Shown: positions 26,601 through 47,600, counted from the first letter of the stretch. The stretch is DNA of 64,000 bases from Thalia democratica (GCA_965202585.1 OZ241828.1:15066001-15130000); one strand, 5' to 3'. Numbers and translations are program-made. The notes: generated from the letters alone by a model not told the origin.

Positions 26601-29600
26601 CAACTTTTTGAGGCTTGTTCTCAGGCAAATCAGACGTTTTAAAGCTGGTTTCAGTTTTTGTTGACTCAATTTTTTCTGAAGGTTTTTTGCGAAGTTCCGT
26701 AGTAGTTTTAGAGCTTTCCACATCCTTTGACAAAGAATTTTCAGGCTTGGAAGGACCTTCAACGTTCTTCTCCTGAGCAGTCTTTAAAACTACTTCTTTT
26801 CCTTCAGAACCACTGGACTTCTTGCTGGTATTTTTGTCCTGAACACTAGAAGATTTCAAGTCTTCGTGCTGTGACATGCTCCTCGTTCTAGATCTTGACC
26901 GCCTTTCACTTCCAAGTTTTCCTTTCGAGCCAGATGAATCACCTTTTACTCGAGATCTACCTCTTTCGGAAGCAACGGGTTTAGTGACGCTTTTCTGGCC
27001 CTGCCTCGTCCTTGAAACAGACCTGGATCTGGTCTTTTGCAGGCGACTGGATTTCAGGTCTGTTTTGGTCACTAACTTATTAATCAAAGAGCCGCTTCTG
27101 CTGCGAGTAGCGGTTTTAGCACTAGGCCCAGTAGGTTTCGACTCAATTTTTTTCTTGTAGTTTTTACCTGTCTCAAGGCAAATATCCGGCTTTTTCGGGT
27201 CAACTTCCACAGCCTTCTCCGAAGAGCTGTTGGAGTTGGAAGAATTCGATTGTGAGTCGAATTCCGGTAACTGATCAACTCCCAGCCTTTCATCAATTTT
27301 TTCCTTGTTGACCCTGTCAACCTCTTCAGCGTTATTTTTGTTGCCTTCCTCGCAAACGCTCTGCCGCGTTTGGCTCCTCGTCCTCTTCCTTTTCATCCTC
27401 TGCTGTTCCTCCTTCTCCTTTTTTATCTCCAGACTGATCCTCCTTTTGGTGGCCTCCAACTTCTTTATGTAATTCGTCTTTTCGGGACTTTTCGCTTTGA
27501 AGCTCTCAATTTTTTTCTCCAGCTCCTTCTCCATTTCTCGTTTTTTGAGAATTTCCCTCACTCGTTCGGTGTACTTCAAACTTTTGTCTGTTTCAGCTTC
27601 CCCCACCACGACCGAGCCCTTTTCTATCTGGCTTCTCGTCGATCTGGTCCTGGGAGACGTCGGCGCGAAACTTTCTGCGAGCTTCTTCCTACTCTTAGGG
27701 TTGTTTTCTCCCGAGCCGTCGAAAAATTTGACGCTCTTCTTGGGAGAAACACCTTTTTTAGGAGAAAATTCAACCTGATTTTTCTTTCTGGGGCTTTTTC
27801 TTGTAGGATTTTTAGAGCTTGCTTCGGAAGATTTTTCCTGCAACTGATCAATACCCAGCCTTTCGTTTAATTCTTTTTTATTTTTGTTACTTTCTTCGTC
27901 ATCTGTGTTTTGGGCGTCCAGTTCTTTTCTGTTGTAGTGGTAGGTCTTCCAATTTCTGAAGAACTTCCTACATCTAGACATCCTGTTTAAAAATTTTAGT
28001 AATTAGTACATTTTATATTTTCAAAGTTTTACTTAATTGTATAGTTTTAGACCTAAATCTATTTGATAATTAAACGTATATATAAACCATGTTTTTTTTC
28101 AAAGTTTGTTAACTATAACAACAATTAGATTATATAGACAAAATAAACAAATTAATAAACAGCTATATAGCTTATATTTAAAGCTAAGTTGAAATAAACA
28201 AAAAAAATTATAAAACACAAGTAGTTAATATATATTATCAGTTATGAGCTAGGATTAGTATAAAGAGTTTTTTAACAGTTTGCCCATAGCAAAACTAAGT
28301 TTTAATTATTCGTAAGTGTGGAGACCTAAGGAGACTTTTATTAAACAATTTGAGCTAATTTTGAATGAGAAGATATTTAGATATAAATTCAAAATAAAAA
28401 AGTATTTACACAACTTTTACATTTCTTACACTTAGATTTTTTCTTGATTAAGTCAATAATTGTCCAAAAAACTTTAAGTTATGACGTCAGCAAACTGAAA
28501 TGTTTGAAATATAAAATTCGTTTTCAAAGTTTTTTGTTTCAATTAGTTTTACTTAAGGCTTTGTGTTGAACGTTTTTTATTTTTGTGTCTATTTGGAATA
28601 CAGTTTAGCTTTGTGTGTTTTAAGATAGGAAAAATGTCGTTCAGAAGACTCAAAATTAATTCGGAGAATCCAGTTTTGAAGAGTTTGATCAAAACCGAAA
28701 AAGATGAACTGACTTTAATGGCTAGGTTTAAATTTCAAGACAATTTTAAAAACTTTTTATCTTTTTTGCATAAATTAGCATACATTAACATCTTAGTTAA
28801 GCATAATATTTTTTTTAATAGTAAATATTGAATAGTTTGGTTTTGGTACTGGTTTTAATTAAAAAGTTTAAACATAACTGACTCATTTTCAAAAAAAAAG
28901 TTTATTTATTAATTTCGTTTAGCTCTTTTCAGAATAACATTGCTAAAAACTATGAATATTGTAGAGTAATTTTAGTTATATATAATGAATTTGAAAAGTC
29001 TAACAAAAAATAGTTACGTCATAAAGAATAAAAGTCTGTTTAGAAAAAGTTTGAAAAATAGAATAGAGCTATACTGAACTAACTTAAAGTAATTTATAAG
29101 ACAAAATTGCTAAAACAAAAACATTTAAAATAGTATAAATTTTTACCTTAAACTAAATTAAATAAAAAGCACATTAAAAATACGACAATAACAACAACGA
29201 AAAATAATACTACTAAAGACCCTATTTGTAAAGTTTTAAATTGTAAAAATCTCTTTGTTTGCAAATTTTTGGCTCGCGAGATCTAATAAATAGAGATTCT
29301 AGAACTGAAAGATGGTAGGTGTTTCTAGCTCGGGATAGGATTTCGAACCTATTATCCAGGTAGTTCTCGGCACAAACAGGGTTGTTGAGGAGGTGCTGAT
29401 TTTGTCTTATAAATTACTTTAAGTTAGTTCAGTATAGCTCTATTCTATTTTTCAAACTTTTTCTAAACAGACTTTTATTCTTTATGACGTAACTATTTTT
29501 TGTTAGACTTTTCAAATTCATTATATATAACTAAAATTACTCTACAATATTCATAGTTTTTAGCAATGTTATTCTGAAGAGAGCTAAACGAAATTAATAA

Positions 29601-32600
29601 ATAAACTTTTTTTTTGAAAATGAGTCAGTTATGTTTAAACTTTTTAAGTAAATATTGCATTATTGCATTGCTTTTTTATTCTGTTTGTCTGATTTAAAGC
29701 TTGAAAATATACTTTGCAGTTTCAGCTCTACGAAAATCAAACCTAAAAATGAGAAAAAGAAAGTCAAGCAACAAGAAAAAGTTTGTTAAGACTTATCTGT
29801 TTTGATCAGTTTACGAGTTAAACTTCAAGTTATTCTAGAAGCCGTATTACCTTCATTATTTTGGTCAATTTCAAATATTCAAGTGACAATACTTGATAAG
29901 TAAAGATTTATTAAAGCTTGTTTATCCAACTGTTTCTAAATTTGTTTATACCAAGGTCATTGTTTTGCTTATTATTACAACTTTTGAAAATTGCTATTAC
30001 AACATAAATAATAATAAATAATACAAGCTTTTGACAAAAAACAGACATATGCAGTAGATACAAAATTTCTACTTTTCCAGGTGTTTGGAAACCCGAAAGC
30101 TATTAGACTGATTCAAAGTATATCACAGCAATCAAACAGGCATGTTAACCACAACAACAAGAAAATAAATAAAATCACGAAACTTGACAAATTAAACAAA
30201 AAATTAAATAATCAAGTTCCACAAGTTTGTAGCGGTCCTTTAAACAGCGGTAGAGTTAATACAAAAGTAAGAAGCTTGCACAAGTTAACGTCGGCTATAA
30301 AGTTGAAGTTTAGTGATCAAAACATTAATAAGAAAAAAGTTACTTGGGTAGACCAAGTTAAAGGATCGAGCATTGCAAAGTAAGTTTAAATAATATTTGG
30401 TAAATTATAGGCAAAACACTTTGAATTTTGACTTAAAAATATAGATTATCTTTTATTAGTTAACATCTTACGCTTTATACTTTATTTATAGTAGATACAG
30501 AATAAAAGATAAGAACTTAATATATTTTATTTTAACTTGATTTTTTTTAGTTATTTATTAATAATATGTATTAACTTTCTTGGTTTATTTTTTAATTTAG
30601 ATACAGTACGATGATTTACGACCACAAATTGAGGAAGTTCAGAGAACAAAACGAAAACGAAAATATTGACGACATAACTACGACTTCTACTTTTCATTGT
30701 AATTGCAGGTAAAATTAAAATATTCCATGTTAAAATATTAGTTAACAAGAGATTTCAAAAGAGTTTGTTTCTCTATTTTTATACAAATTTAAAACATTAA
30801 AGAGTATGTACTTTCTGTTGTCATTCAGATAAAAGCATTTGAATTAATTTGGCAATTAACCACAATTAATTTTACTAATTTTTGTAAAAGAGTAACAGTT
30901 TTTTTAAAGTTCTGTACTAGTGTGAAGCTTATATCACATTGGATAAATTTAATTTATAAACGAATTTTTTCCGTTGTAATTCAGGTAAAACCTTATTGTG
31001 ACTTCTGCGCCAATTTATCACGAAAGTTTATTATGACATCACTAATGAAACATTGAGTCATAACTATTACGTCATAGTAAACGTTGTGCCAACCGAGTGC
31101 ACTTTAAGTTGTTTGTCGAGCAAAAACTTAATAAATTGAACAAATACTCGTATCTAATTAAATCTTGACAAACAAGTCAACTTAGTTTTCGTTTAAATTA
31201 CTCTTTAATTTTCATTAAACATGGTCAAATGTCATATAAGACTTATTGAATTGATAGATAAAATAGTTTTTTTTTTTTAATTCTTGAGATAAGTTTTGTA
31301 TCATTGTTATTATAATTTAATTTTCAGAGACATAAGAGAATGTCCATTGCAAGGCAGCTGTTTGTCGAAAAACATAAAGTTCAAGATAAAAGTGGAGAAC
31401 AACAACCAAGTTAAAACTTTTTACGGAACATGCAAGAACTCTACTTTTAAGAGCAGGTTCTATCAGATCAAGCATTTGATGAAAAATAGAAATATGACGT
31501 ACATGAATCCATTTGCGAGGTTAGTAAAAAAAATTATATATTAAACTTATGTCCATTTGCAAGTACAAGCTATGTGCTGTTATGTTGATTTTTACTGGTA
31601 AGTTGTTGTTTATTTGCTTAATTAATATTACTTGATGAAAAATTGAAGTATGTCGTACATTAGTCCATTTCAAGGTTAGTAATATTTAAGTATTTTTAAT
31701 ATAATAGCTTTCATATACTTCTTTGCAAGTTGAAATATTCTGTTCATTTTTCCTTGTAAATTTTGGTGAGTTTGCAAGGTTGGATGCAGTTTTTTGCAGT
31801 TCAAAATTACAATTACCAGGGAACCTTTTTCAATTAAAACCATAACAATAACTGTTTAAACGTTATCCAACTTTGTTGTTTGTAATGTAGCATTTGATCA
31901 AAGTTGGTGGTATTAGAGCGTTTTGCAGGGTAAATATTTCAAATTTGTTAAATTTCCACCATGATGAATGAACTTTTTCTTCAAGGTGTGCTGTAATTAC
32001 GAGGTCGTATAGGTGGGTTGAACTTTGAACGTTCAAAATGTTGACAGTTTGTAAAAAAAATAAGAAGTGTGTGTTATTGGTGTTTTAAATAAAAATAAAT
32101 AAACATTAACTCGTTTACAAGGTAGTCAATTGTACTTTTAGTTGGGTGCTTAAACTTTTGGTTTACAGTATTAAAACTGAGGAAAAGGACATTGTTAAAA
32201 CTAAATTATTTTATACATACATTTAAACTTAATCAATTTATGAGATAAACCATGTATAATGTATTGTAAATATGTGTTAATATGCTGTTGAGTCTGTATT
32301 TAGTTTTAGCTGTTTTTTTTTTTTGTAAAATTAGCTAAAAGCTATTTTCAGTAGGAAAAGATCAAAGAGTTTGTAATTGTGTAATTATGGTTTTGAAAAC
32401 TCATAATGTGTTTACAAACAGACAAAAAAGCCATTAACTCTCTCTAATCTACATCTCACACGTAAAAGGTGAAAACTTCACTTTTACAACAAGTTCAGAC
32501 AAAAAAAAATCCTACATAAAAGTTTGCTAACTTAACAAAGTTCAAGTAAACTCTAAACATAGCAACTTTGAAAAACTTCAGTATATTTATGTCTAAAACC

Positions 32601-35600
32601 TCTAAATGACCAAGTTTAAAAACCTAAATACTTATATATATGTTACTAAAAAAACAACATAAAAAAACAAGTAAATAAATTAGTAAGTAGTGGCTGTATC
32701 TTTAACAGTTGATAAAACATTTATAATCTGACGTACAAGACAATGTAACTTTTTATATAAATAATTCATGGGAGATTTAAAACAATTTCAGCCAAGTAAA
32801 TGGGTTTATTCAATTTGTTTCTTTTTCATAAGAAACTTTTCCTTCATTTTTAAATTATTTATAAACAACAAGATTTGGTTGGGGAAACTTTGAATAGATT
32901 TAGTAACTGGCCAAAATTTAAAATAAAACAACAAAATTTATCGACTTTAATAGCGACTAAAATAACTTTGAAGCTTATCTTAGAAATGAAACAGTTTTTT
33001 TTTTATTATAATTTTAAATACTTATGTCCAGCCTAAAGGCTTTTATCTAAATAGGGAAGTTTTAAATAGAAATTTTTATAATTTTAAAAGGCAAAAAATT
33101 ACATTGAAGAAACTATAAATTGATAAAAATCAATTAAAACTTAAATTTGATGATAACTAAATTTTCAATTTTATTTTCTTATATAAAACAACACTTTAAA
33201 ATAAAATAAATTGTTTTTGGTAAAATCTAAAATTCCTAATTCACAATTTCTATACTGAAACACATATATATTTAAACCTTATTATTTTAAGTCTATCAAA
33301 GACGTGGTATAAAAATAAAAGCAGCAAAAATAAAACAAACTGGTAAATAAACAAACTTTGTAAAAACAATGAACTTAGTTAAACAAACAAAATTGCCACG
33401 AGTTTTGTATGTAAACTTTAAACGAGCGAATAATTAGTATTTGCAAAACAAATAAATAAAAAAACACGAGTTAACTGGATTACTAGTTGTTAAATTCTTA
33501 GTTTAACTTATGATTTTAAATAAAAAACGGGTTTTATACATAAAATTATTTAAAATTTTACAAACAACCCAAACAAGTAATTTTTCGTTGAAACACGCAG
33601 ACTCAATATTGACGAAATAAATAAAAAGTCGGATTTACAAACTTAATTTTAAGAAGTAAATTTTCGGATTAAATTTTTTTCAACAGAATTATAAACAACT
33701 CAGAAAAAATTGTTTAATTTTTATACGTTACCCAAAACAAATAAACAAAAAACACGAGTTAACTGGATTACTTGTTAACTTTAAGAGAAACTTGCAGACT
33801 TTTTAATAAAATAATTAATTTTATACATAGAAATTATCAAAACTTTACAAACACCCAGAACAATTTGTTTTCCCTAAAAAAAAAATTCGATATTGAAAAA
33901 TAAATAGAAAATTGGATTTTACAAACTTAACTATAAGAAGCAAGTTTTCGGTTTAAAATTCTTTTCAACACAGTTATAAACAAGCAAAATTCGTTTAAAT
34001 TTCAACACGTAGACCAATAGGTTACAAAGAAGCGCAACTCGATACTACTCAAATTTCAGCAAAATTACTCAAATTTCAACTAACTAACGGGCAAAACGTT
34101 TTTGCTTTGTAAATAAATTCAAGTTAGTTCACACGCCAGGCGCAAAGTTTAAATTTGAACTATTTTATATTACTTAGCAAAAAACAATTTTTGGTTTAAA
34201 CAGCAAACTAAATAAAAACTGAGTTCAGCTGTTAACATTTAAAAGCAGATTAATAAAAAGTTAACAAAACAAAAATATAATGCATTTCAGCTCGAAAACT
34301 TGCCTAGTATTAACAAATCTATTCAAATTTGCTAAAATAAATTATTAAAAAACATTTGATTATAAGTAAGTTGTATAAATAGGAGTATGATATGTAGAAA
34401 CTCTATAAAATAAATAAAAAAGTAATTTATAATTTCAGTTGTTCTGCTTTGCTTTTTGTTTAATTATTTCTGTTTAAAACCTCAAAATGTTATCCAAAAA
34501 GTTTACTCAAATTTTGTCACGAGTGAAAAATATAAACTACTTGCTCATAACAAAATTTGTTCAAAGAAAGAAGTCTGTTAGTCGGATATAAAACAAACAG
34601 AGTAATTTAGCTTTTTCTGTTTGGTAATTTAGTCGCAAATAAGTGACACACAAGTCTCTTATTATCTTGCCAGCCAATTTCGTCGAAACTTTAAGAATTT
34701 ATCGATTCTTCAAGTTTCGACCGTTATATTGTTTGTCGTGGTTTCAGTTGTTAGTTACTTTTTTAGCTGTTTTTATTTGTTTCTTTTTATATGATTACTT
34801 TTGCATGTAAAAATGATGGTTTATCTTTTGTATGACTACTTTTTCCGAATATGTAAATTTGCAAAAGATAATTAACACAATCTTAAGAATACTTACATAA
34901 CTTTCTTTTAATCATATTTTTAATGTATAAAACCTAAAATTCAAAAATAAAAATGTTAACGTTTTAAAAGGTCAGGCTAATACATTACAGTTTGGTTTCA
35001 GTTTCATTTTGAGTGTGATTAATGTATATGCAGCTAGGTTAACTTTGTTTATTTACTCATTTATAACAAACTTTAATGACAGTATTTTCGTTTGTCAGCA
35101 TATAACGGTTTAAGTTTAAACCAACAAATAAATATATTCTATACTGGTAAAAATATACATTTTTTTAATAAAAACTATGATAATAAAACAAAGCGATTAA
35201 GACTTTACAACAGATAACCAACTATTTAACTGTTAAACCTATAAAATAAAAAACAAATTAAAGTTTCAACTTTTAAGCTTTAGTAACCAACCGCAAAAAT
35301 TTCAGTATTCATAACTCAAAACAAATAAAACACTAAGAAGTTTTATAGATAGACTTTAAATATATTTTACTTATACTAAAAACTAGCAAATAAGTTTTGT
35401 AACAAAAATAAACCAATTTTTCTTACATAAATTTCAAACCAAAAGTTCAAACTAAACTCATAGAATTCTTAATAAATCAAAAGCTTAACAAAACTTCTTT
35501 AAACTTTTCTTACTTAAATACACTGAAAGTTTGAAACCGGTAACTTTGTATTGAGTGTGTATAGAGAAAAAACGAAAAGTTTCTCTTGGTAATTCGAGAC

Positions 35601-38600
35601 TGTTACGTCATAGTTGACTTAAGTGAGAGAATTGCCGATTATATAGCATTGTGTGTGTGCGAAATTTTTGGTGAATAGTTTTCAAAATTATTTTTTAGGG
35701 AAAATATGAAGTGTATATGTGTGAACTGTAATTCACTGGGCTAAATTATTATCAACAGTATTGCTTATTAAATTGACTTAAAATACGTGAAACAAGCACT
35801 TTCAAACATAAGTCACTAAAATATAATACTTGTGTGTGTGTGTGTGTAATTCGCAAGGATTGTTTGACATTAACTTATTATGACCCTTGTAAAGTTTCCT
35901 GAATGGTAGTTTATGAGTTGTTTAGAGTCTAAATGTCAACAACATTTGTATGTTAAATATATATGTAATATTATTTTACTATTGTGTGTGTGTGTACTTG
36001 AAAGCCTTTTTTGTTTCTTCCATAAATAAAACTTTTTGATTTATCAAAAACGTCTCATTTAAATTGAATAATTAATATAATTAGTACGAGTTACTGGTTT
36101 GTTCCATAATATTCATGTAACAAAAGCTAAAAAATAATATTGTGTGTTAACAAGTAACTAAAATTTACTTTCTAGATTATTTTAACGTTGCTTATGGTTT
36201 ACTATCAACTTTAAAACTGACTTTATGCCAAGTGATTTTAATTTTTGTGCATAAATATGGTTGAAAAATAGAATTAAACTTTTTATTCTATTTGAATAAT
36301 TAATATAACTAATACGAGTTACCGGTTTGGTTTAAAATATTTGTGCAACAAAAATTAAAAAATAGTTATGTGTGTTTATAAGTAATTAAAATTGACTGTT
36401 TCACACTATTTTAATGTTGCTTATGGTTTACTATTAGTTTTAAAACTGACTTTGTGTAAAGTGGTTTTTGTTTTTTAAATGTTTATGGTTGAAAAATAAG
36501 ATTATAATTTGCTAGCCAATGTGTGTGTCTCTTTGCGAATCAACCTTAAATTGACCCTATATTGCGAACTTAATAAGATATTGTTTGCGTTGTATTATTT
36601 TAAATTTTTCCTGAGAAAATGAGTGTTAAATATAAGTAAATTTGTGTAAAGAGTATTTCTTTTACTAAATAAATTAAGTTTAAACAGTTGCATTTCAAAA
36701 ACCAATAATTTAATCCTCTTTGAACAATGCAATTCTGTGAAAACGTAAAATTTAAGCGCTGCGTAACTTGATACGGCGGAAAATTACTGTTTAATATAAG
36801 TTCCCGCGTTTCAATACACAAAGCTGCAATTTATATGTGAGAGAAACTTTTTTTGGATAAAAGCTTTGCTGAGTTTAAGTATTTTTTTGCCTCTATCAAC
36901 ATTATTCTAACAAAACTTTAAAGTTTATTTATGTTAGGTTTTGACTTGTTACTCATCTTTGAATTACTGTCAAATGTAGCATCATATTTACTTCAATTCT
37001 TGTTTATATGTAAATACGCATATATGCTAATGCTTTGTTTGATAAAGTCTGCTTAGTGTTTTAATTTTGAATTCCTTGACGCTGAAATCAAGTTTTCATT
37101 AAATTTCATGAAGTATTTTGTAATATTTTCATTTACAGCAGCGTAGTAGAGACTTTAATGTTGATTGAAATAAAAAAAGGTAAATGTTCCGGTTTTAAAG
37201 TCTAGATAACTTAAACATATGTAAATGAAAAATAACTTATGTCTAATCGTAAGCTTAAATTTATATCTTGTTAAAAGTTTTTTGCGATTTTGTTAGCGCA
37301 AATTAAATTCAAACATTTTTATGTTTGAACATTGTTGCTGTTTAATTAGAAGTTATTTTGGGCTAAAGTTTTTGAAAACTAAGGTTTAAGAAAAATTAGT
37401 AAATTGCAGAATTAAATTAATTATTCTATAACTTATTTGATCGCACATCACTGATAAAACATACTTTAATAACCCAATTATCAAGCTAGATATAATATGG
37501 TTAATAAGTTAATAGTGGTTGTTAAATTATTTATTTAAGTCTCACTGATTTTTTGACTTCATCTGAACAGTTTAGTTCGCAATATTTGGCCTTTCAAAAC
37601 TTTTTGTGAAATTAATTTTTAAATTTAACTTTTTTTTTCTAGATACATCTGGAAACTTAAAAGGAAGAAGGAAAGTTTCGACGTGCAGTACAGAGTGGTT
37701 GACCAGCCTGCAGTCAGCACAGGTAGTAGTGGCAGCAAGAAATCGTGTTCGTGCAGAGTCAGAGTGAGCGGAAAGACAAGCAAGAAGGTGAAGAAATAAG
37801 AAGGGCAACAGTGGAAATTTTGTTCTTGTTTTTTTTTATTTGTCTAATATTTAGAAGTTAGTAACTTGAAAACAATAAAATGTAAAAAAACTGAAATTTA
37901 TTAACTTATGATTGCAATTAGTATGTTAATATTTTTATATATTTTATCTATTACATATTTATAACAAATACATAATGTTTTAATACAAAAAACATTCTGT
38001 AAATTTAAATAATCAGTGACTACTAATTATGAGTTAGAAAACTTAGATTGGTATAAGGTATTAGATCTTATTAAAAATTATTTAACAACCAAATAACAAG
38101 CTTAATAATACAAATTTAAAAACCTGTCGCCTTTTATCATTTATAATTCTAAAAAAACTTGAAATTATTATTTTAATTCACTAATTGCTAATAAATTAAT
38201 ATATTTTATTGTTTTTATATTAATCAAAGTAAATATTCAATATAACTTTTAAATACTAATTGTTAAACGAGTTCAGTTTAATGGTTATGCATTGAATGTT
38301 GCAAAACAAAAGAATAAAATATTTTATAAGCAATACAACATTTTTTCAACATTTATTACTGAAATATCATTTAAGCAAAACACAATCTGAAGCGCCTTAC
38401 TTAAAAGCCAAGCGTATAAACTAAGAAAACTTTGAAAACAAAACTGCAATCGAGTTTTATTTTTAATCAGCTCACTACCTGCAGCACGATGACACGAAGA
38501 AAAGTTTGCTTAAAAATATAATACATAATGGTAAGTTTACAAACTACTTGTAACATAAAAAGTTCTTCTTCCTTTTTAAAAAGTAGGCGTGCAAAATTTT

Positions 38601-41600: not shown

Positions 41601-44600
41601 ATCATCTTTACTATTTGTTTTAAATAATCTATTTTCATTTATTTTATTTGGTAAATGACCAACTGATCGCTTTCAATTAATTTATTTTATTATCATTGCA
41701 CATACCTCAAACACCAAAGAGCCTTGTGGTTTTTAGCGAAAACGTCATCGTCGACCTTATTGTTTCGCTTCGACCTCATCGAAATTCTTCCTTGCACCTG
41801 ATTGGACGAATTTTTCTTGGAGCTCCTCTCGAGCAACAACATCTGTTCGAATTTCAAATGCTACACATTTGCGTACAAAAAATGTGGGTTAGCGTGGGGT
41901 TTTGACATGCTTTTTATAATAATTTATAACTACATTTATTTATATTGATTAATCTACAGCATAACATTAAATACTACTCATAAGGGTAATGTTCAAATTT
42001 TAAACTCTACATTGATATTTGTAAAAAATAGATTGGTTAGCGTCAGTTTTCACCATGCTTTTGAGTTACTATATAGATTTATTAATACTTTAGCTAGTTA
42101 CAAAAATAAATACTACAACTTACCATAAGTTTTGAATTTAAAATTCTAAATTGAAGGTTGTACAAAAAAAATTGGTAAATATAAGGTTGTACAAAAAAAA
42201 TTGGTAAATATAAGGTTGTACAAAAAAAATTGGTAAATATAAGGCTTAAACATTCTTTTTATACTAACTTACATTACATCTGTAGTAAAACATTACAACT
42301 AGGTATGATGCTCATTTGTCAATAAAAACTTACACAAAAAATATGGTCAATGTGTTTTTAGTATGGTTTAATGTTGAAACAAGACTGCAAATACAGTCAA
42401 TATTTTGTTTTTAAGAAATTTGATCTAACAAAATATATAAAAAAAAGCTTATTATGATGGATGACTTATTATGGATGACTTAAATGTGCATATTGATGTT
42501 ATTGTTCTCAAAGTAAAGCAATATAAAATATTCAACTAAAAATTTACAAAAACCTTTTGGTATATCAGGGTTTAGCAATTTATAACCATGCATTCATACA
42601 TTTATCAACACTTGTATAAATTCTACTTTAGAATTTATACAAACTATTTGGTTACTGTGGTTTAGTAATTTGATATACAAGCATGTATATAATTACAGTT
42701 GCTACATTTTCCCATGCATTTTTTAAGTATCTTGTTCCTTGCAATTATTTTAGAACTTTAAATATAGCATGGGAGTTAAGATTTCAAACTTTTAAATTAT
42801 ACACAAAAAAAATATTAGTCAGAGGGATTAAGTGACTTGTTTTGAAAATATAATTTGTTTAGTTTTAAAGCTAAAAAATTTTTTTTTGAAATAACGCATG
42901 AAAAAAATCCTTACAATAGCAACATATTTATGATGTTTTCAATTGTTTTAAAGGTAGCAAACGAGAAAAAATACTGAAAAAATACTAATATTGATTCTAT
43001 TCCTCAAACTTATTAAGGTTTAATATCCATGAATAAAAACCATACAAATTTGATAAACTAAATGAACACCAACATTAACTCTAATCCTCAAATTTAATAC
43101 TTCAAAATCTTCCAAACAAATTCAATTTTAAAAACTATTATTTTTTAAACACTTACATTGACTTTATTCCTTAAATTTTTGATAGTTTCGTTTCCGGCGA
43201 ACAAATAGAAATCGTCGTTCATTTGAAAGTCACCACATTTGTAACAGAACAGCGTCTGATCGTCCACGTTCATCATAATGGCGTGACCCGACTGTTTGTA
43301 GTGGTCCAACGCGTGGTTCTCAATGTACCTATGAAAACATTTACACAATTCAACAAAATTTCTGTACATAAGTAAATTTTAACTACCTATGTAATCTGTG
43401 GAATAAGTAATTGTGTCATGTATATGTGTGTATTAAGATTAACTATTATAGGGTTTAATTGCCAGAATGTGTGTAATGGTCCAATGCATGGTTCTCAATT
43501 TGTCTCTGTATATGTTAAAATTAATTAAATTTGTACTTAAGATGTACTTGAAGGTTTTGTTTGTGTTTATTTTTTGTTGAATACAATGTGTTCATTTTCA
43601 TTTTTATCATTGTATGTCTAAGTGGCTCAGGTTTTGATGCCTGAGTCCGACATTGCACAAAAACAATATAATAAAAAAGTTAAAACACTGATCAAAATTT
43701 GTTTCTATAAGTAAAAGGCTATTGAAAGTATTCATTCAGTTCAAATTCCATATTTCTTTATTATTAATAGAGGTGTAATTAAGAAACTATTTGGCACTAG
43801 ATTGGTTATGAATGAAAAATACTTGCAGTATCCTTTAACAACTTATTTACCTACAGATACATCATTCAATGATTTTAATCCACATTTAGAGGATACTTTA
43901 ACTTTCGACTACTTAACAATTATACAAAGTTCTTATCAAAATATAACTTTTTAGGTATTAAAGTACTTTAGTTCGTAAAACTTAGTTTGTTATTTACAAA
44001 ATAAAAAGCAAATATAAAGCATTATGACATTGCATTTTTACAAGTTTCAAATAAATAATGTGTCATACAAAACAAATAACATGAGAATGCAGTGGTTTTT
44101 CCAGCATTTCGTTATTTGCAATGCAAATGAGTGGGAGTTAGTATGGTCGGTGATACCAGTTTTATTGCTTGTATTTCAACTACTGCTGAAATAAACATGT
44201 TACACTTTCCATTTGTTGATTTTCATATGCAATTTAAAACTGTTTTTGATGTAAAAAAACTTTTCTCATGTAAAGTTGTGTCTTTTTTCTGCCTATTTTG
44301 CTAAAATCTGTAGTTGAATTTTTCTGTGCTTATGTTACTACTTCTGTACCAACTTAAAAATATTTAATTCATTTATAAATGTAACATTAACTCATGATCA
44401 TGACCGAAAAATATTTACTATCAGACATTAAATAAATTCTAAAACACTCAGTCTATCTTAATAGAAAGAAAACTTAATTTTTGAATGCTAAAATGTACTT
44501 AAACCAACTTTCTGTAACTTAGACTTAAGGCCTTTTTTATACAATTTAGACAAACAATTAATTTTTAAATAAAACTTTACATACTCCATGTAAGTATTGA

Positions 44601-47600
44601 AAACATTATCAATTTAAAGAAATCGCAACAAACTATTGCAATTAGTACAAGTTTTGCAACATTATTTTTATATAATTGAAAACATATATATTTACAAACC
44701 TGCTACAGGCCACATGTGAACACTGAAGACAAGCCATCAAAGACTCGTTGGTGCCACAACATTTGCAGAACCACTGGGAAACGTTGCACAGAGATGACGA
44801 TTTAAAATCTTGCATTTTCAGTTTGGCCAGGTGGCTACACAAGCGAGTAGATAGCTGAGATAAAAAAAAGGAAGTAATTAATTTTCATTGATTATTGTGA
44901 TGTAGTTATACATATTATCATGATAACCTTTGATTATTTTATCTGCTCTGGTATAACTAAATAAACCATAGTTATTAAAAACATATTTTCTATATGTATG
45001 GAAAATAAAATAAGGAAAATTAATAGTTTACTAATTACTATTATTATGTGAATAGGTTCTAATAAGTGAAAATATATTCTTTTTAAAAATACTTTTATTG
45101 AAATTGAAATTCAACAATTTACTTTTTTAATCAATAAACTTAGTAAGCATGATTAATGATATTTCATTAAGAGCAGAGTTTTCAGAGTTTTTTAATAGTT
45201 ACAGCCAGAGGGGGTAAATATGTTATTTAATTAGTATTCTGTTATTATTAACAACTAAATCTACTGTTACTTTTTATTTTCTATTCAAACCAAGTTTTGA
45301 AATGTAAGTAGTTTTGAGAGTTTCAAAAGCTTCTTTTAATTTATTGGCAGCTGCAATACACTACTCAAATTTGTGTTTGTACTGACTTAAATTCTATTTA
45401 AGCTAATTTCAATTTATATCTATTAACTTTTATTTAATTGATCAAAAGATTATTTCCTATAAGTTTTTAGGTAAAGTGGGTTAGGGTTAAGATTTAAAAT
45501 AATTGGTTAAATGAGTTAGGGATAAAGGTTTAACTCAAGGTTTCCCATAAAAGTAATTTTGAATTTTAGTACAGTTATAGAAATGTTTAATAAAATAAAT
45601 TCTAACTTAGATAGTCTTTGGTTTTATTTTTAATTTTGTCAAGAGGAAAACCCCAGTTTAAAACCTTAGTACTGTACTGCTGCACTGTTAGTGTTTCTCA
45701 TTTGCATAAATAAAATAAGCAAAAATAAGTTGCTGCAGCCAACTTATGGATGGGGCATACTAAACAATGTCAGTTTACTAAAAAACCATCTTCTTCTACA
45801 TTTTAAAAGCAAGTTTTAACAATGTTTTCCAACTAATCTTTATAAATCAAAACAAAAACTTTAGAAAGAAATTTTTAAATTTACTTAATTTTTTTTTTCC
45901 AACAAAAAATACAAGTTTTCCATGTTTTGGCTACAAAATTTTATTTTCAAAATTTTATAAACTTGTTCTAACTTGTATAACAATTCAAAGAACATTTTCT
46001 AAAAATTAAAGGTCTCTATCATAAAAAATTTAAAACAAGTTAAATTTTAAGTGAGAACTTAAGATTCAGAAAAACTGTGGTCCATATAATTCTATTGAAA
46101 TCCATTTACAGAGATTTTGTAAAATTTAGCTTTTGAGATTTAACTAAATTTTGTATATTATACAAAAACTGACTGCTATTTCTTATTCCAAGGCTTCTTT
46201 TAAAACTGATTTTTAATTTTAGTAGAAAAAAAAAATATTTTTGAACCCCCTGTGGCTCAACTAACAAAACAAAAAAGTAAAAATTATTTGTAGACAGCTA
46301 TATAGAAAAAATTAGATGAATTAGTAACTAATAAGGTTGTAAATTTTGTGAAAAAAGTTGTAGTATGCAAACACAGTAAAGCCTTATTGTTCTAAAATCT
46401 TTATCCTTTGAACATCTTTAGTTTTATAATTGAATTTAATTTAGACACCTAGATTATTTCTTTAAAATACAATAAAACAACTAACTTCATAGCCATATTG
46501 CTTGTAGCTGAACCCATTAGCTTTTATGGGGCTTTCCTGTGAAAAAAATAATCATATAAAATTTGTGATGTTTAAAAAGTGTTTGTGTGTATGTTATGAT
46601 GATTTTAAAACTTTACAATATTACAAAAAAAAAGTGAAACTAATTAAATTACAATATCTAATTAAATTACAATATTACAGTTTAACTATAATTAGTATTA
46701 CAAAACATTTGTATTTTAAACTAATCTTATTTTCATAAAATTGGTAGAAATAACTGTGGTATGTAACTATAAATTAAACTATAACAAACAACCAAAAATT
46801 AAATAGATTGCTATTAAAACATTTACAAAAATATTTCATTGAAAATTGTTTAAATAAAATGATTAAAAATAAAAGTGTTATTTTATTATATGTTTTATTT
46901 TTTTGTAAGAGGCCTGTAGTCTGCTCGTTAAGTAATTTTCATATAGAATTATTTTCATAAGAATGAGTAATTTTGTTTAAAAAATTTCTTTATGTACTGA
47001 ATTTCATAAAATTTAAAAAAGTATTAAATGGAGAGAAAAATTGACATTGCTCAGGGTTTTCATAGATATTTAAAGAAAAATTTCCATTTTTTCTGAATTT
47101 CTTGCAGGTTTTCAAAAGTGTTTTTGTCAACTTGTTGTCTTAAATCTATTAAAAAAACCTTTTATAAATAAATATTAAAACTTCAAAAAGATACTGTAAT
47201 GCTACTTTAATATATGATGATTCATAAAATAATTTTTGTATACAATAGATTTTTTGTATTTAATCAAAATTTTGTAAATTTATATTTGAAAACTGTTCAA
47301 AGTATCAGATTTTATCAGGTTTTTTAAGGTTTGTTTTGACTAAATTGTCAAATTCCAGGTGTTTTCAAAACCCCAGGTTATATGGCAACCCTGTTTAATG
47401 TTTTTGTAGCTTAATTTTAAACAAACTTTTGAATTTCCAAAGTATACATTAACAAAAAACTATTAAAAACACCACATAAGTTTTGTTGAATGATTTTTTG
47501 TAGTTATTTCATTTTTTATTGTTATTATTTAATTGAAAAACATCATTCAAAAATATAGGTCCATGGTTGCCACTCATCAAGCTGAGAAAAATTTCCTGAC

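Follow-up and report, generated by a model that had tools for sequence, protein, structure and literature searches.

How does an intron-bearing gene whose product carries part of a retroelement endonuclease come to lie within the intron of another gene, and what could such a protein do? The question is raised by a 64,000-nucleotide (nt) stretch of the Thalia democratica genome (GCA_965202585.1 OZ241828.1:15066001-15130000; this whole stretch is referred to below as the window, and positions are counted from its first nucleotide). In it, a six-exon gene on the plus strand had been interpreted, from the DNA sequence by itself, as a candidate domesticated GIY-YIG endonuclease of a Penelope-like element (PLE). 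We found this gene to be spliced, present in a single copy, and conserved in related marine sequences, with a C-terminal part that is homologous to a PLE endonuclease of the Hydra clade and that has lost its catalytic residues. We consider it probable that a fragment of such an endonuclease was domesticated here as a pseudo-nuclease module, and that the resulting protein serves as an adaptor that targets protein phosphatase 1 (PP1).

The six exons join in phase with AG/GT at every border, to give 909 nt, namely 302 codons and a TAA stop (Table 1), in agreement with the protein of about 300 amino acids (aa) that had been proposed. For exon 2, the borders listed are the only ones that match both the length and the sequence of the orthologous mRNA (P0023/L025), and the orthologous mRNAs stop at the same place as exon 6. 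Two introns interrupt the endonuclease-derived part of the protein, and their measured lengths bear out the estimates of 0.6 and 6.1 kb: (i) intron 4 (619 nt) splits the Arg codon that follows H-C-N-C (HCNC-R/DIRE), and (ii) intron 5 (6,123 nt) splits the Arg codon that precedes Y-I-W-K-L-K (FA-R/YIW). As delimited by full-length mRNA contigs of related species, the transcript comprises six exons between 28544 and 37863 and is at least about 1.06 kb long. The stretch upstream of the start codon (28300-28633) is conserved more than the introns are, with an identity of 0.806 and few gaps relative to L019, a genomic contig described below. The surrounding DNA is very AT-rich (G+C of ∼24% outside the exons), and the encoded 302-aa protein is very basic, with 68 Lys or Arg residues and 21 Asp or Glu residues.

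Expression and splicing were assessed with RNA contigs from marine metatranscriptomes that had been aligned to positions 28600-34599. One contig (X2 record 5) covers exon 1 (28600-28730), places 56 bases on exon 2, and picks up again precisely at 30081, and a second (X2 record 9) follows exon 3 to its border at 30379 and then crosses exon 4 into exon 5. Two further contigs stop at 31519 (X5 record 21) and 31521 (X1 record 3), and the loose letters of both are the first bases of exon 6, the exon 5/exon 6 junction being represented in the window-aligned contigs by these loose ends only. All five junctions were seen in RNA, and the contigs come from two studies, X1 being an oligo-dT library from another study. 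Moreover, two metatranscriptome contigs of ∼1.1 kb from related species (L025 and L020) contain uninterrupted open reading frames (ORFs) that map onto all six exons, and mRNAs of the gene were found in several metatranscriptomes. The spliced transcripts that had been predicted at the exon 3/4, 4/5, and 5/6 junctions are thus supported by these contigs as well as by L025 and L020. Among the differences between RNA and window listed in exons 3-5, 10 of 11 lie at third codon positions. As a separate observation, sequence from a run of the same labelled organism (X3), which is contiguous across the introns and is therefore DNA, shows five differences from the window within the 108-nt exon 4 (30628-30682), all of them at third codon positions and three of them shared by the RNA contigs; these differences point to a silent-site diversity of ∼4-5% within the species or between haplotypes.

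The samples that yielded relatives of the protein are marine and include those of Tara Oceans, and most of the nearest Atlas clusters are cnidarian. A HMMER search with exon 5 returned P0003 (299 aa) and P0002 (an exon-sized fragment), and a word search returned P0023 (300 aa; its cluster has nine members), which is ∼84% identical to the window protein over exons 1-5 and was the only addition when the word-indexed protein search was made with P0003 and with the family profile. A metagenome scan returned two ordinary Hydra-clade PLEs and no family members. Within the 801-Mb genome itself, exon 5 (as DNA and as protein) and exon 3 (as protein) occur once, all other matches to these exons being PLE copies of at most 45% identity; likewise, a search with the family member P0004 for a second gene returned only this locus and PLE copies. 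One candidate paralogue (L036:8726-9696, at C4:38.137 Mb), located at a distance of 23 Mb, was rejected, as it showed no significant similarity to the family or to the PLE endonuclease (best tblastn E of 0.36-5).

Genomic contigs from environmental assemblies carry exons 1-5 (L019) or exons 3-5 (L023 and L024). The AG/GT splice sites are conserved in all three contigs, and the exon lengths equal those of the window in L019 and L023, an in-frame 24-nt deletion in exon 3 of L024 being the only exon indel among them. By comparison, the introns of these contigs are 65-70% identical to those of the window and full of indels. The contigs are short, and the comparison covers the gene itself.

Substitution patterns were evaluated as rates of nonsynonymous (dN) and synonymous (dS) change. 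Over 300 codons, the window and L025, which represents its closest full-length orthologue, differ with a dN of 0.076 (53.2 nonsynonymous differences at 734 sites), a dS of 0.895 (86.8 synonymous differences at 166 sites), and a dN/dS of 0.085, while the endonuclease-derived codons 151-250 of the window and L019 showed a dN of 0.020, a dS of 0.766, and a dN/dS of 0.026. Over exons 3-5, the window and L023 gave a dN of 0.087, a dS of 0.327, and a dN/dS of 0.27, and L019 and L023 gave a dN of 0.120, a dS of 0.702, and a dN/dS of 0.17; between the window and P0003, dS was saturated. Judged by these codon comparisons, the gene is under strong purifying selection.

These results bear on whether the locus is a host gene at all. 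It could instead be a decayed or non-autonomous PLE fragment with a chance reading frame and splice sites, or a part of an active, intron-retaining PLE, given that PLEs can retain introns (PMC8557442) and that this genome is full of PLE fragments. Such an origin is refuted by the single copy with no reverse transcriptase (RT) nearby, by the dN/dS of 0.085, by the spliced full-length mRNAs in several metatranscriptomes, and by the splice sites kept in L019, L023, and L024 together with the exon lengths kept in L019 and L023, and we give it next to no weight. The sequence-only reading, which had proposed a co-opted host gene, is upheld on each of these counts: exons 3 and 5 are single copy rather than members of a set of RT-linked, intron-bearing copies; dN/dS is not near 1, over the whole protein or over its endonuclease-derived part; and orthologues retain the intron-exon structure.

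To establish where the C-terminal part of the protein comes from, we compared it with the PLEs of the same genome. Residues 184-270 share homology with an abundant PLE that encodes an RT and an endonuclease, specifically with the linker and the N-terminal part of its GIY-YIG endonuclease. In hhalign, the family matched the PLE endonucleases with a probability of 99.5% and an E of 9e-23 over 92 columns, in an alignment that begins at the first Cys, extends to strand β3, and does not reach the catalytic Glu. Of 2,015 candidates in the genome, at least 150 PLE endonuclease copies that were scored share 42-45% identity with exon 5, and a tblastn search of the window with an 888-aa PLE ORF (RT and endonuclease) matched exon 5 (E of 3e-8) and no other part of the window. 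The derivation from a PLE endonuclease and the absence of an RT, both of which had been proposed at the outset, are borne out by these comparisons. The N-terminal 178 residues showed no detectable PLE homology when the full-length family was compared by hhalign with the C-terminal halves of PLEs. A descent of the VxW motif in this N-terminal region from the PLE motif RN(I/V)xW(F/Y)NPPY was also considered and found no support, as hhalign aligns the endonuclease part only.

The features of the linker and of the core identify the clade. Naiad-type PLE endonucleases contain a CX2-5CxxC linker and a CCHH motif inside the core and are located N-terminal to the RT, whereas those of the Hydra clade contain a CxCX5C linker, no CCHH motif between GIY and YIG, a CxxC motif before the Glu, and a CxH motif after the Asn (PMC8557442). 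In the window protein, the linker reads C184-N-C186-x5-C192, followed by C198, and these four Cys are invariant in the family. There is no Cys between β1 and β2, in the window protein and in the resident PLE alike, and the resident ORFs of ∼880 aa have a linker of the CxC-spacer-C type and encode the RT (DKT motif, RWR, and YRDDG) followed by a C-terminal endonuclease. The domain therefore belongs with the Hydra clade, and the Naiad-type assignment, which had been flagged as uncertain, is not retained. The resident PLE also has the CPTC...E and LNKR...CPH elements, which the family lacks, a C-S-C remnant being present in the window clade only. At E of at most 1, Pfam did not recognise the RT of the 888-aa resident ORF. 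With regard to the resident element itself, at the loci inspected (L014 at C6:36.29 Mb, L015 at C1:67.72 Mb, and L016 at C4:23.90 Mb) it occurs as many near-identical copies with intact frames of ∼880 aa, often in head-to-head pairs, and its 'WYNPPY' region is separated from the endonuclease by a long Asn-rich insert.

In a small, unrooted tree of endonucleases, the five family members were monophyletic, with support (77/94, and 83% of bootstraps) that is only moderate. An unrooted tree with a monophyletic family is also compatible with the reverse direction of descent, in which an old host domain, made of the knuckle and half of a GIY-YIG fold, was the source of the Hydra-clade PLE endonuclease. 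However, PLE endonucleases possess the whole GIY-YIG domain, Glu and Asn included, and they are related to homing endonucleases as well as to the endonucleases of PLEs from other clades (PMC8557442), whereas the family is a truncated, inactivated subset found in a handful of marine sequences only. Because half of a catalytic domain is unlikely to have given rise to a complete one, we regard the reverse direction as hardly credible and take the family to derive from the PLE. Further, the resident PLE copies are uninterrupted at the positions of introns 4 and 5, so both introns appear to have been gained after domestication.

We next considered the fold of the endonuclease-derived part; for this and for complex prediction, external tools were run on the orthologue P0023 in place of the window protein. 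An AlphaFold2 (AF2) model of P0023 residues 170-300, built on an alignment of the family with PLE endonucleases, has a core with predicted local distance difference test scores (pLDDT) of 77-89 and consists of two strands, three helices, and one strand (β-β-α-α-α-β). A structural search of 48,161 PDB representatives ranked I-TevI first (1ln0_A, chain residues 2-73, with 65 aligned residues at a root-mean-square deviation of 3.5 Å) and T4 endonuclease II second (2wsh_A), both with a Z of 4.5, which is weak and tied with unrelated entries. In AFDB, the top four clusters are named 'GIY-YIG domain-containing protein' (E of ∼5e-6, and template modelling (TM) scores of 0.60-0.63), and Atlas clusters matched with TM scores of 0.62-0.64 at 2 Å. 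The GIY-YIG fold expected from the motif was thus recovered, with only the N-terminal part of that fold present.

The residues of the active site were then examined one by one across the family. Strand β1 has IKF instead of GIY, the position of the GIY tyrosine being occupied by Phe in the window clade and by Tyr in P0004 and P0006. Strand β2 has FYG instead of YIG; these residues (F218-Y219-G220) are invariant, and the YIG tyrosine is accordingly a Phe in five of five aligned members. In helix 1, the core arginine (Arg230, in F-K-S-R) is kept in all members except P0006, which contains a His at this position, and His236 (in I-K-H) is invariant. Every member ends at or soon after β3 (P0004 directly after it) and none has the half of the domain with C..C..E and LN.R, so that the metal-binding Glu and the Asn are absent; the tail of the window protein after β3 contains no Asp or Glu. 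Because the YIG tyrosine is replaced in all members and the part with the Glu and the Asn is missing, the protein is not a normal GIY-YIG nuclease, and the working endonuclease implied by the earlier interpretation does not hold. The domain is most likely, to judge from its conserved and missing residues, a pseudo-nuclease that keeps the recognition module, which would have been retained for nucleic-acid recognition or binding.

It may be asked whether the domain could still cut or nick through non-canonical residues, or with the Glu/Asn half supplied in trans, through dimerisation or by a partner. The window clade retains Arg230 and His236, the GIY tyrosine is kept in P0004 and P0006, and the conserved C-S-C in the tail of the window clade may be a remnant of the CxxC that precedes the Glu. 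Yet the metal-binding Glu and the Asn are absent from every member, with no acidic residue after β3 in the window protein; the YIG tyrosine is Phe throughout, the arginine is a His in P0006, and P0004 ends right after β3. We therefore consider an active nuclease very unlikely and proceed with the pseudo-nuclease.

In the N-terminal half, residues 1-185 of the full-length model have low confidence, with a pLDDT below 50 over the exon 3 region, and are predicted to be disordered. Among the five aligned members, the only invariant columns in this half are Leu117, Lys125, Lys127, Val138, Trp140, Asp142, and Gly146, the rest being unalignable. Val138 and Trp140 form part of an RVxF-type motif, which reads KKVTW in the window protein, L019, L023, L024, P0023, and P0003, and which in the distant members reads RVTW (P0006) and GVRW (P0004). 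PNUTS, an RVxF-type PP1-interacting protein, has the motif TVTW.

The genome encodes a canonical, intronless PP1 catalytic subunit (PP1c; L030:1327-2316), and its residues 1-305 were modelled in complex with P0023 residues 112-176, alongside three controls and relative to a pass mark that 51 of 78 solved complexes and 2 of 108 mismatched pairs attain. The PP1c-P0023 pair scored 0.89 and the best control 0.00, with the qualification that the predictor may recall solved RVxF complexes; at least 63% of contacts were common to the three runs, and the pLDDT of the partner was at least 51. The predicted contacts are (i) Val138, Thr139, and Trp140 against PP1 residues 168-169, 242-243, 261, and 288-292; (ii) Ile149-Lys151 against PP1 residues 292-295; and (iii) Ser122-Lys127 near PP1 residues 49-59 and 166-167. 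On PP1, these residues are known to form, respectively, the RVxF groove, the neighboring site for the hydrophobic pair, and the SILK site, so that the prediction places KKVTW in the RVxF groove of the PP1 that this genome encodes. As an observation on the phosphatase genes themselves, PP1c (L030, C8:57.12 Mb), a divergent PP1-like protein (L031, C8:51.89 Mb), and PP2Ac (L032, C6:54.92 Mb) are encoded in single uninterrupted frames of 339, 367, and 316 aa, respectively, while the rest of the genome is intron-rich and AT-rich; the PP1c region is also unusually G+C-rich in its other frames.

A pseudo-nuclease module and a predicted PP1 docking motif in one protein make a PP1-targeting adaptor the most likely mechanism. 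A PLE fragment, comprising the Cys-knuckle linker and the first β-β-α-α-β part of the GIY-YIG endonuclease, would have become fixed as a single-copy host gene and would subsequently have carried spliceosomal introns inside its element-derived coding sequence. In the present protein, the knuckle and the pseudo-nuclease would select a site on nucleic acid, to which the docking string would recruit PP1.

Several results weigh against this proposal. With respect to the fold, Pfam called GIY-YIG in no family member and found nothing significant in the exons (isolated PLE endonuclease fragments themselves gave only sub-threshold Pfam GIY-YIG matches, with E of 0.014 and 0.0024), Foldseek against PDB returned nothing at E of at most 0.001, a profile search of PDB sequences returned 0 matches at E of at most 10, and the Z of the PDB matches is weak, as mentioned above. 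With respect to descent, the support for family monophyly is moderate only, and P0006 forms a long branch. The RNA contigs are 90-97% identical to the window and come from metatranscriptomes rather than from a labelled sample of Thalia democratica. With respect to docking, RVxF-like strings are common by chance, and the predictor has seen many RVxF-PP1 complexes, so that a pass may show only a likeness to known peptides. P0004 (G-V-R-W) lacks a basic residue at position -1 or -2 and therefore fails the strict RVxF motif. Lastly, relative to L023 (L023:291-589), the 24-nt deletion in L024 (L024:95-400; both from Tara Oceans and from one near species) removes eight residues, including the SILK-like A-I-K-L, and leaves KKVTW intact; since the SILK-like contact (SAIKLK) is deleted there, it is probably not essential.

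A different role for the same module would be that of an element-restriction factor, in which the inactive domain competes with the active Hydra-clade PLE endonuclease for DNA targets or integration intermediates and acts as a dominant negative, a role that would be compatible with PP1 recruitment. Truncated transposases repress their parent elements, and the genome is full of an apparently young PLE with the same linker and endonuclease (at least 2,015 candidates, many with intact 880-aa ORFs). In addition, the catalytic residues were lost while the fold remained strongly constrained, and the retained part includes the linker that has been tied to targeted insertion at (TA)n (PMC8557442). However, the gene shares no more than 42-45% identity with the resident endonuclease; fast evolution would be expected of a repressor that tracks its element, but the dN/dS of the endonuclease part is 0.026, and the invariant VxW motif is left unexplained. 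We thus consider restriction unlikely and favor the PP1-targeting adaptor.

Comparisons with known systems further define the protein. Like the Hydra-clade PLE endonucleases, it has a CxCX5C linker followed by CPLxGxCL, no CCHH, the F-K-x-R and His positions, and a (Y/F)(I/V)WxLK helix. Unlike them, it is encoded by a single-copy gene without an RT and with two introns inside the homologous region, its YIG tyrosine is a Phe, it ends after β3 without the CxxC-Glu and Asn-CxH elements, and it has a new N-terminal region of 180 aa. I-TevI (1ln0) and T4 endonuclease II (2wsh) are its best structural matches in PDB, the model aligning to I-TevI residues 2-73, that is, up to a point before Glu75; however, sequence identity to these enzymes is 12-14%, they contain the Tyr, Glu, and Asn that are missing here, and they lack the Cys knuckle. 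As in RVxF-type PP1 interactors, a [KR]-x0-1-[VI]-x-[FW] motif in a disordered basic stretch is followed by acidic or polar residues and by a hydrophobic pair about eight residues on, with a predicted position in the PP1 groove that residues 169, 243, 261, and 289-293 form, whereas the protein has no sequence homology to known PP1 regulators, its binding to PP1 is a prediction, and P0004 departs from the strict motif.

Among transposable-element proteins, DNA transposases and retroviral gag and env are well known to have been domesticated, and for PLEs the link usually discussed is the RT ancestry that they share with telomerase. A classical case is CENP-B, which derives from the pogo transposase (PMC4231638). 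The present gene resembles such domesticated genes in being single copy, conserved, and expressed, and in keeping an element-derived module, here with a putative role in nucleic-acid recognition, after the loss of mobility functions; it differs from CENP-B-type cases in that its source is a PLE endonuclease rather than a DNA transposase or gag/env. In the papers searched, neither a host gene derived from a PLE endonuclease nor a combination of GIY-YIG with PP1 docking is described, in keeping with the earlier statement that no equivalent was known. A bolder reading can be put forward tentatively, as a possibility somewhat short of an even chance: that this is the first host gene derived from a PLE endonuclease and a new kind of PP1 subunit, in which the dead module of a (TA)n-targeting element would guide PP1 to specific DNA or to intermediates of PLE integration, with two introns gained after domestication. 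In any event, the locus is a clean case of domestication, being single copy, spliced, conserved, and catalytically disabled, and it suggests the reuse of a retroelement target-recognition module, apparently joined to a phosphatase-docking motif. It also provides a natural experiment on which part of a PLE endonuclease binds nucleic acid without cutting, as well as a dated example of introns in a sequence that contains none in the parent element, and the small size of the protein makes the predictions of PP1 binding and DNA binding directly testable at the bench.

The gene around the nested gene is a deubiquitinase with zf-UBP and UCH domains on the minus strand, with further UCH exons extending down to ∼5.4 kb. 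The location in a USP intron, as first described, is correct, and one point is to be amended: because the deubiquitinase is on the opposite strand, the gene is nested antisense in the large intron, its start lying ∼650 nt from the giant exon of the host.

Table 1. Positions in the window of the nested gene, of the repeat in its first intron, and of selected exons of the host gene
Feature	Position	Strand	Basis or remark
Minimal 5' untranslated region and upstream region	28544-28633	+	L025 positions 2-185 map to 28544-28731
Exon 1, coding part	28634-28725	+	ATG at 28634; N-terminus MSFR conserved
Exon 2, 61 nt	29720-29780	+	Same length in L019
Exon 3, 299 nt	30081-30379	+	Encodes basic, low-complexity region, predicted disordered
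RVxF-type motif K-K-V-T-W, residues 136-140	30333-30347	+	Family alignment
Exon 4, 108 nt	30601-30708	+	Ends H-C-N-C (start of Cys knuckle); 92% identical to L019
Exon 5, 192 nt	31328-31519	+	Rest of CxCX5C-x5-C knuckle, β1, β2, helix 1
Exon 6, coding part	37643-37799	+	Helix YIWKLK, strand FDVQYRVV, basic tail; TAA at 37797-37799
Minimal 3' untranslated region	37800-37863	+	L025 and L020 map to 37858/37863
Inverted-repeat insertion in intron 1, young, high-copy	28854-29652		Repeat search; arms 28854-29107 and 29399-29652
Host zf-UBP exon	44645-44884	-	Upstream of the intron holding the nested gene
Host zf-UBP exon	43148-43378	-	Pfam PF02148, E 2.2e-10; upstream of the intron holding the nested gene
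Host giant exon, 2,422 codons	27981-20713	-	Downstream of the intron holding the nested gene
Host UCH Cys-box exon	19381-19085	-	After the giant exon

The insertion in intron 1 is not part of the gene product. It consists of 254-nt arms that are 99% complementary and a 291-nt loop, is absent from L019, and reaches ∼1000 times the depth of its flanks in the DNA run X3; the Rfam hammerhead models were not matched in it at the gathering score or at E of at most 1. The giant exon of the host, which lies between the zf-UBP and the UCH parts, encodes a sequence of low complexity that is rich in Ser, Lys, and Glu and contains internal repeats (SEKSEVV units), and its G+C content is 34-42%, compared with 24% around it.

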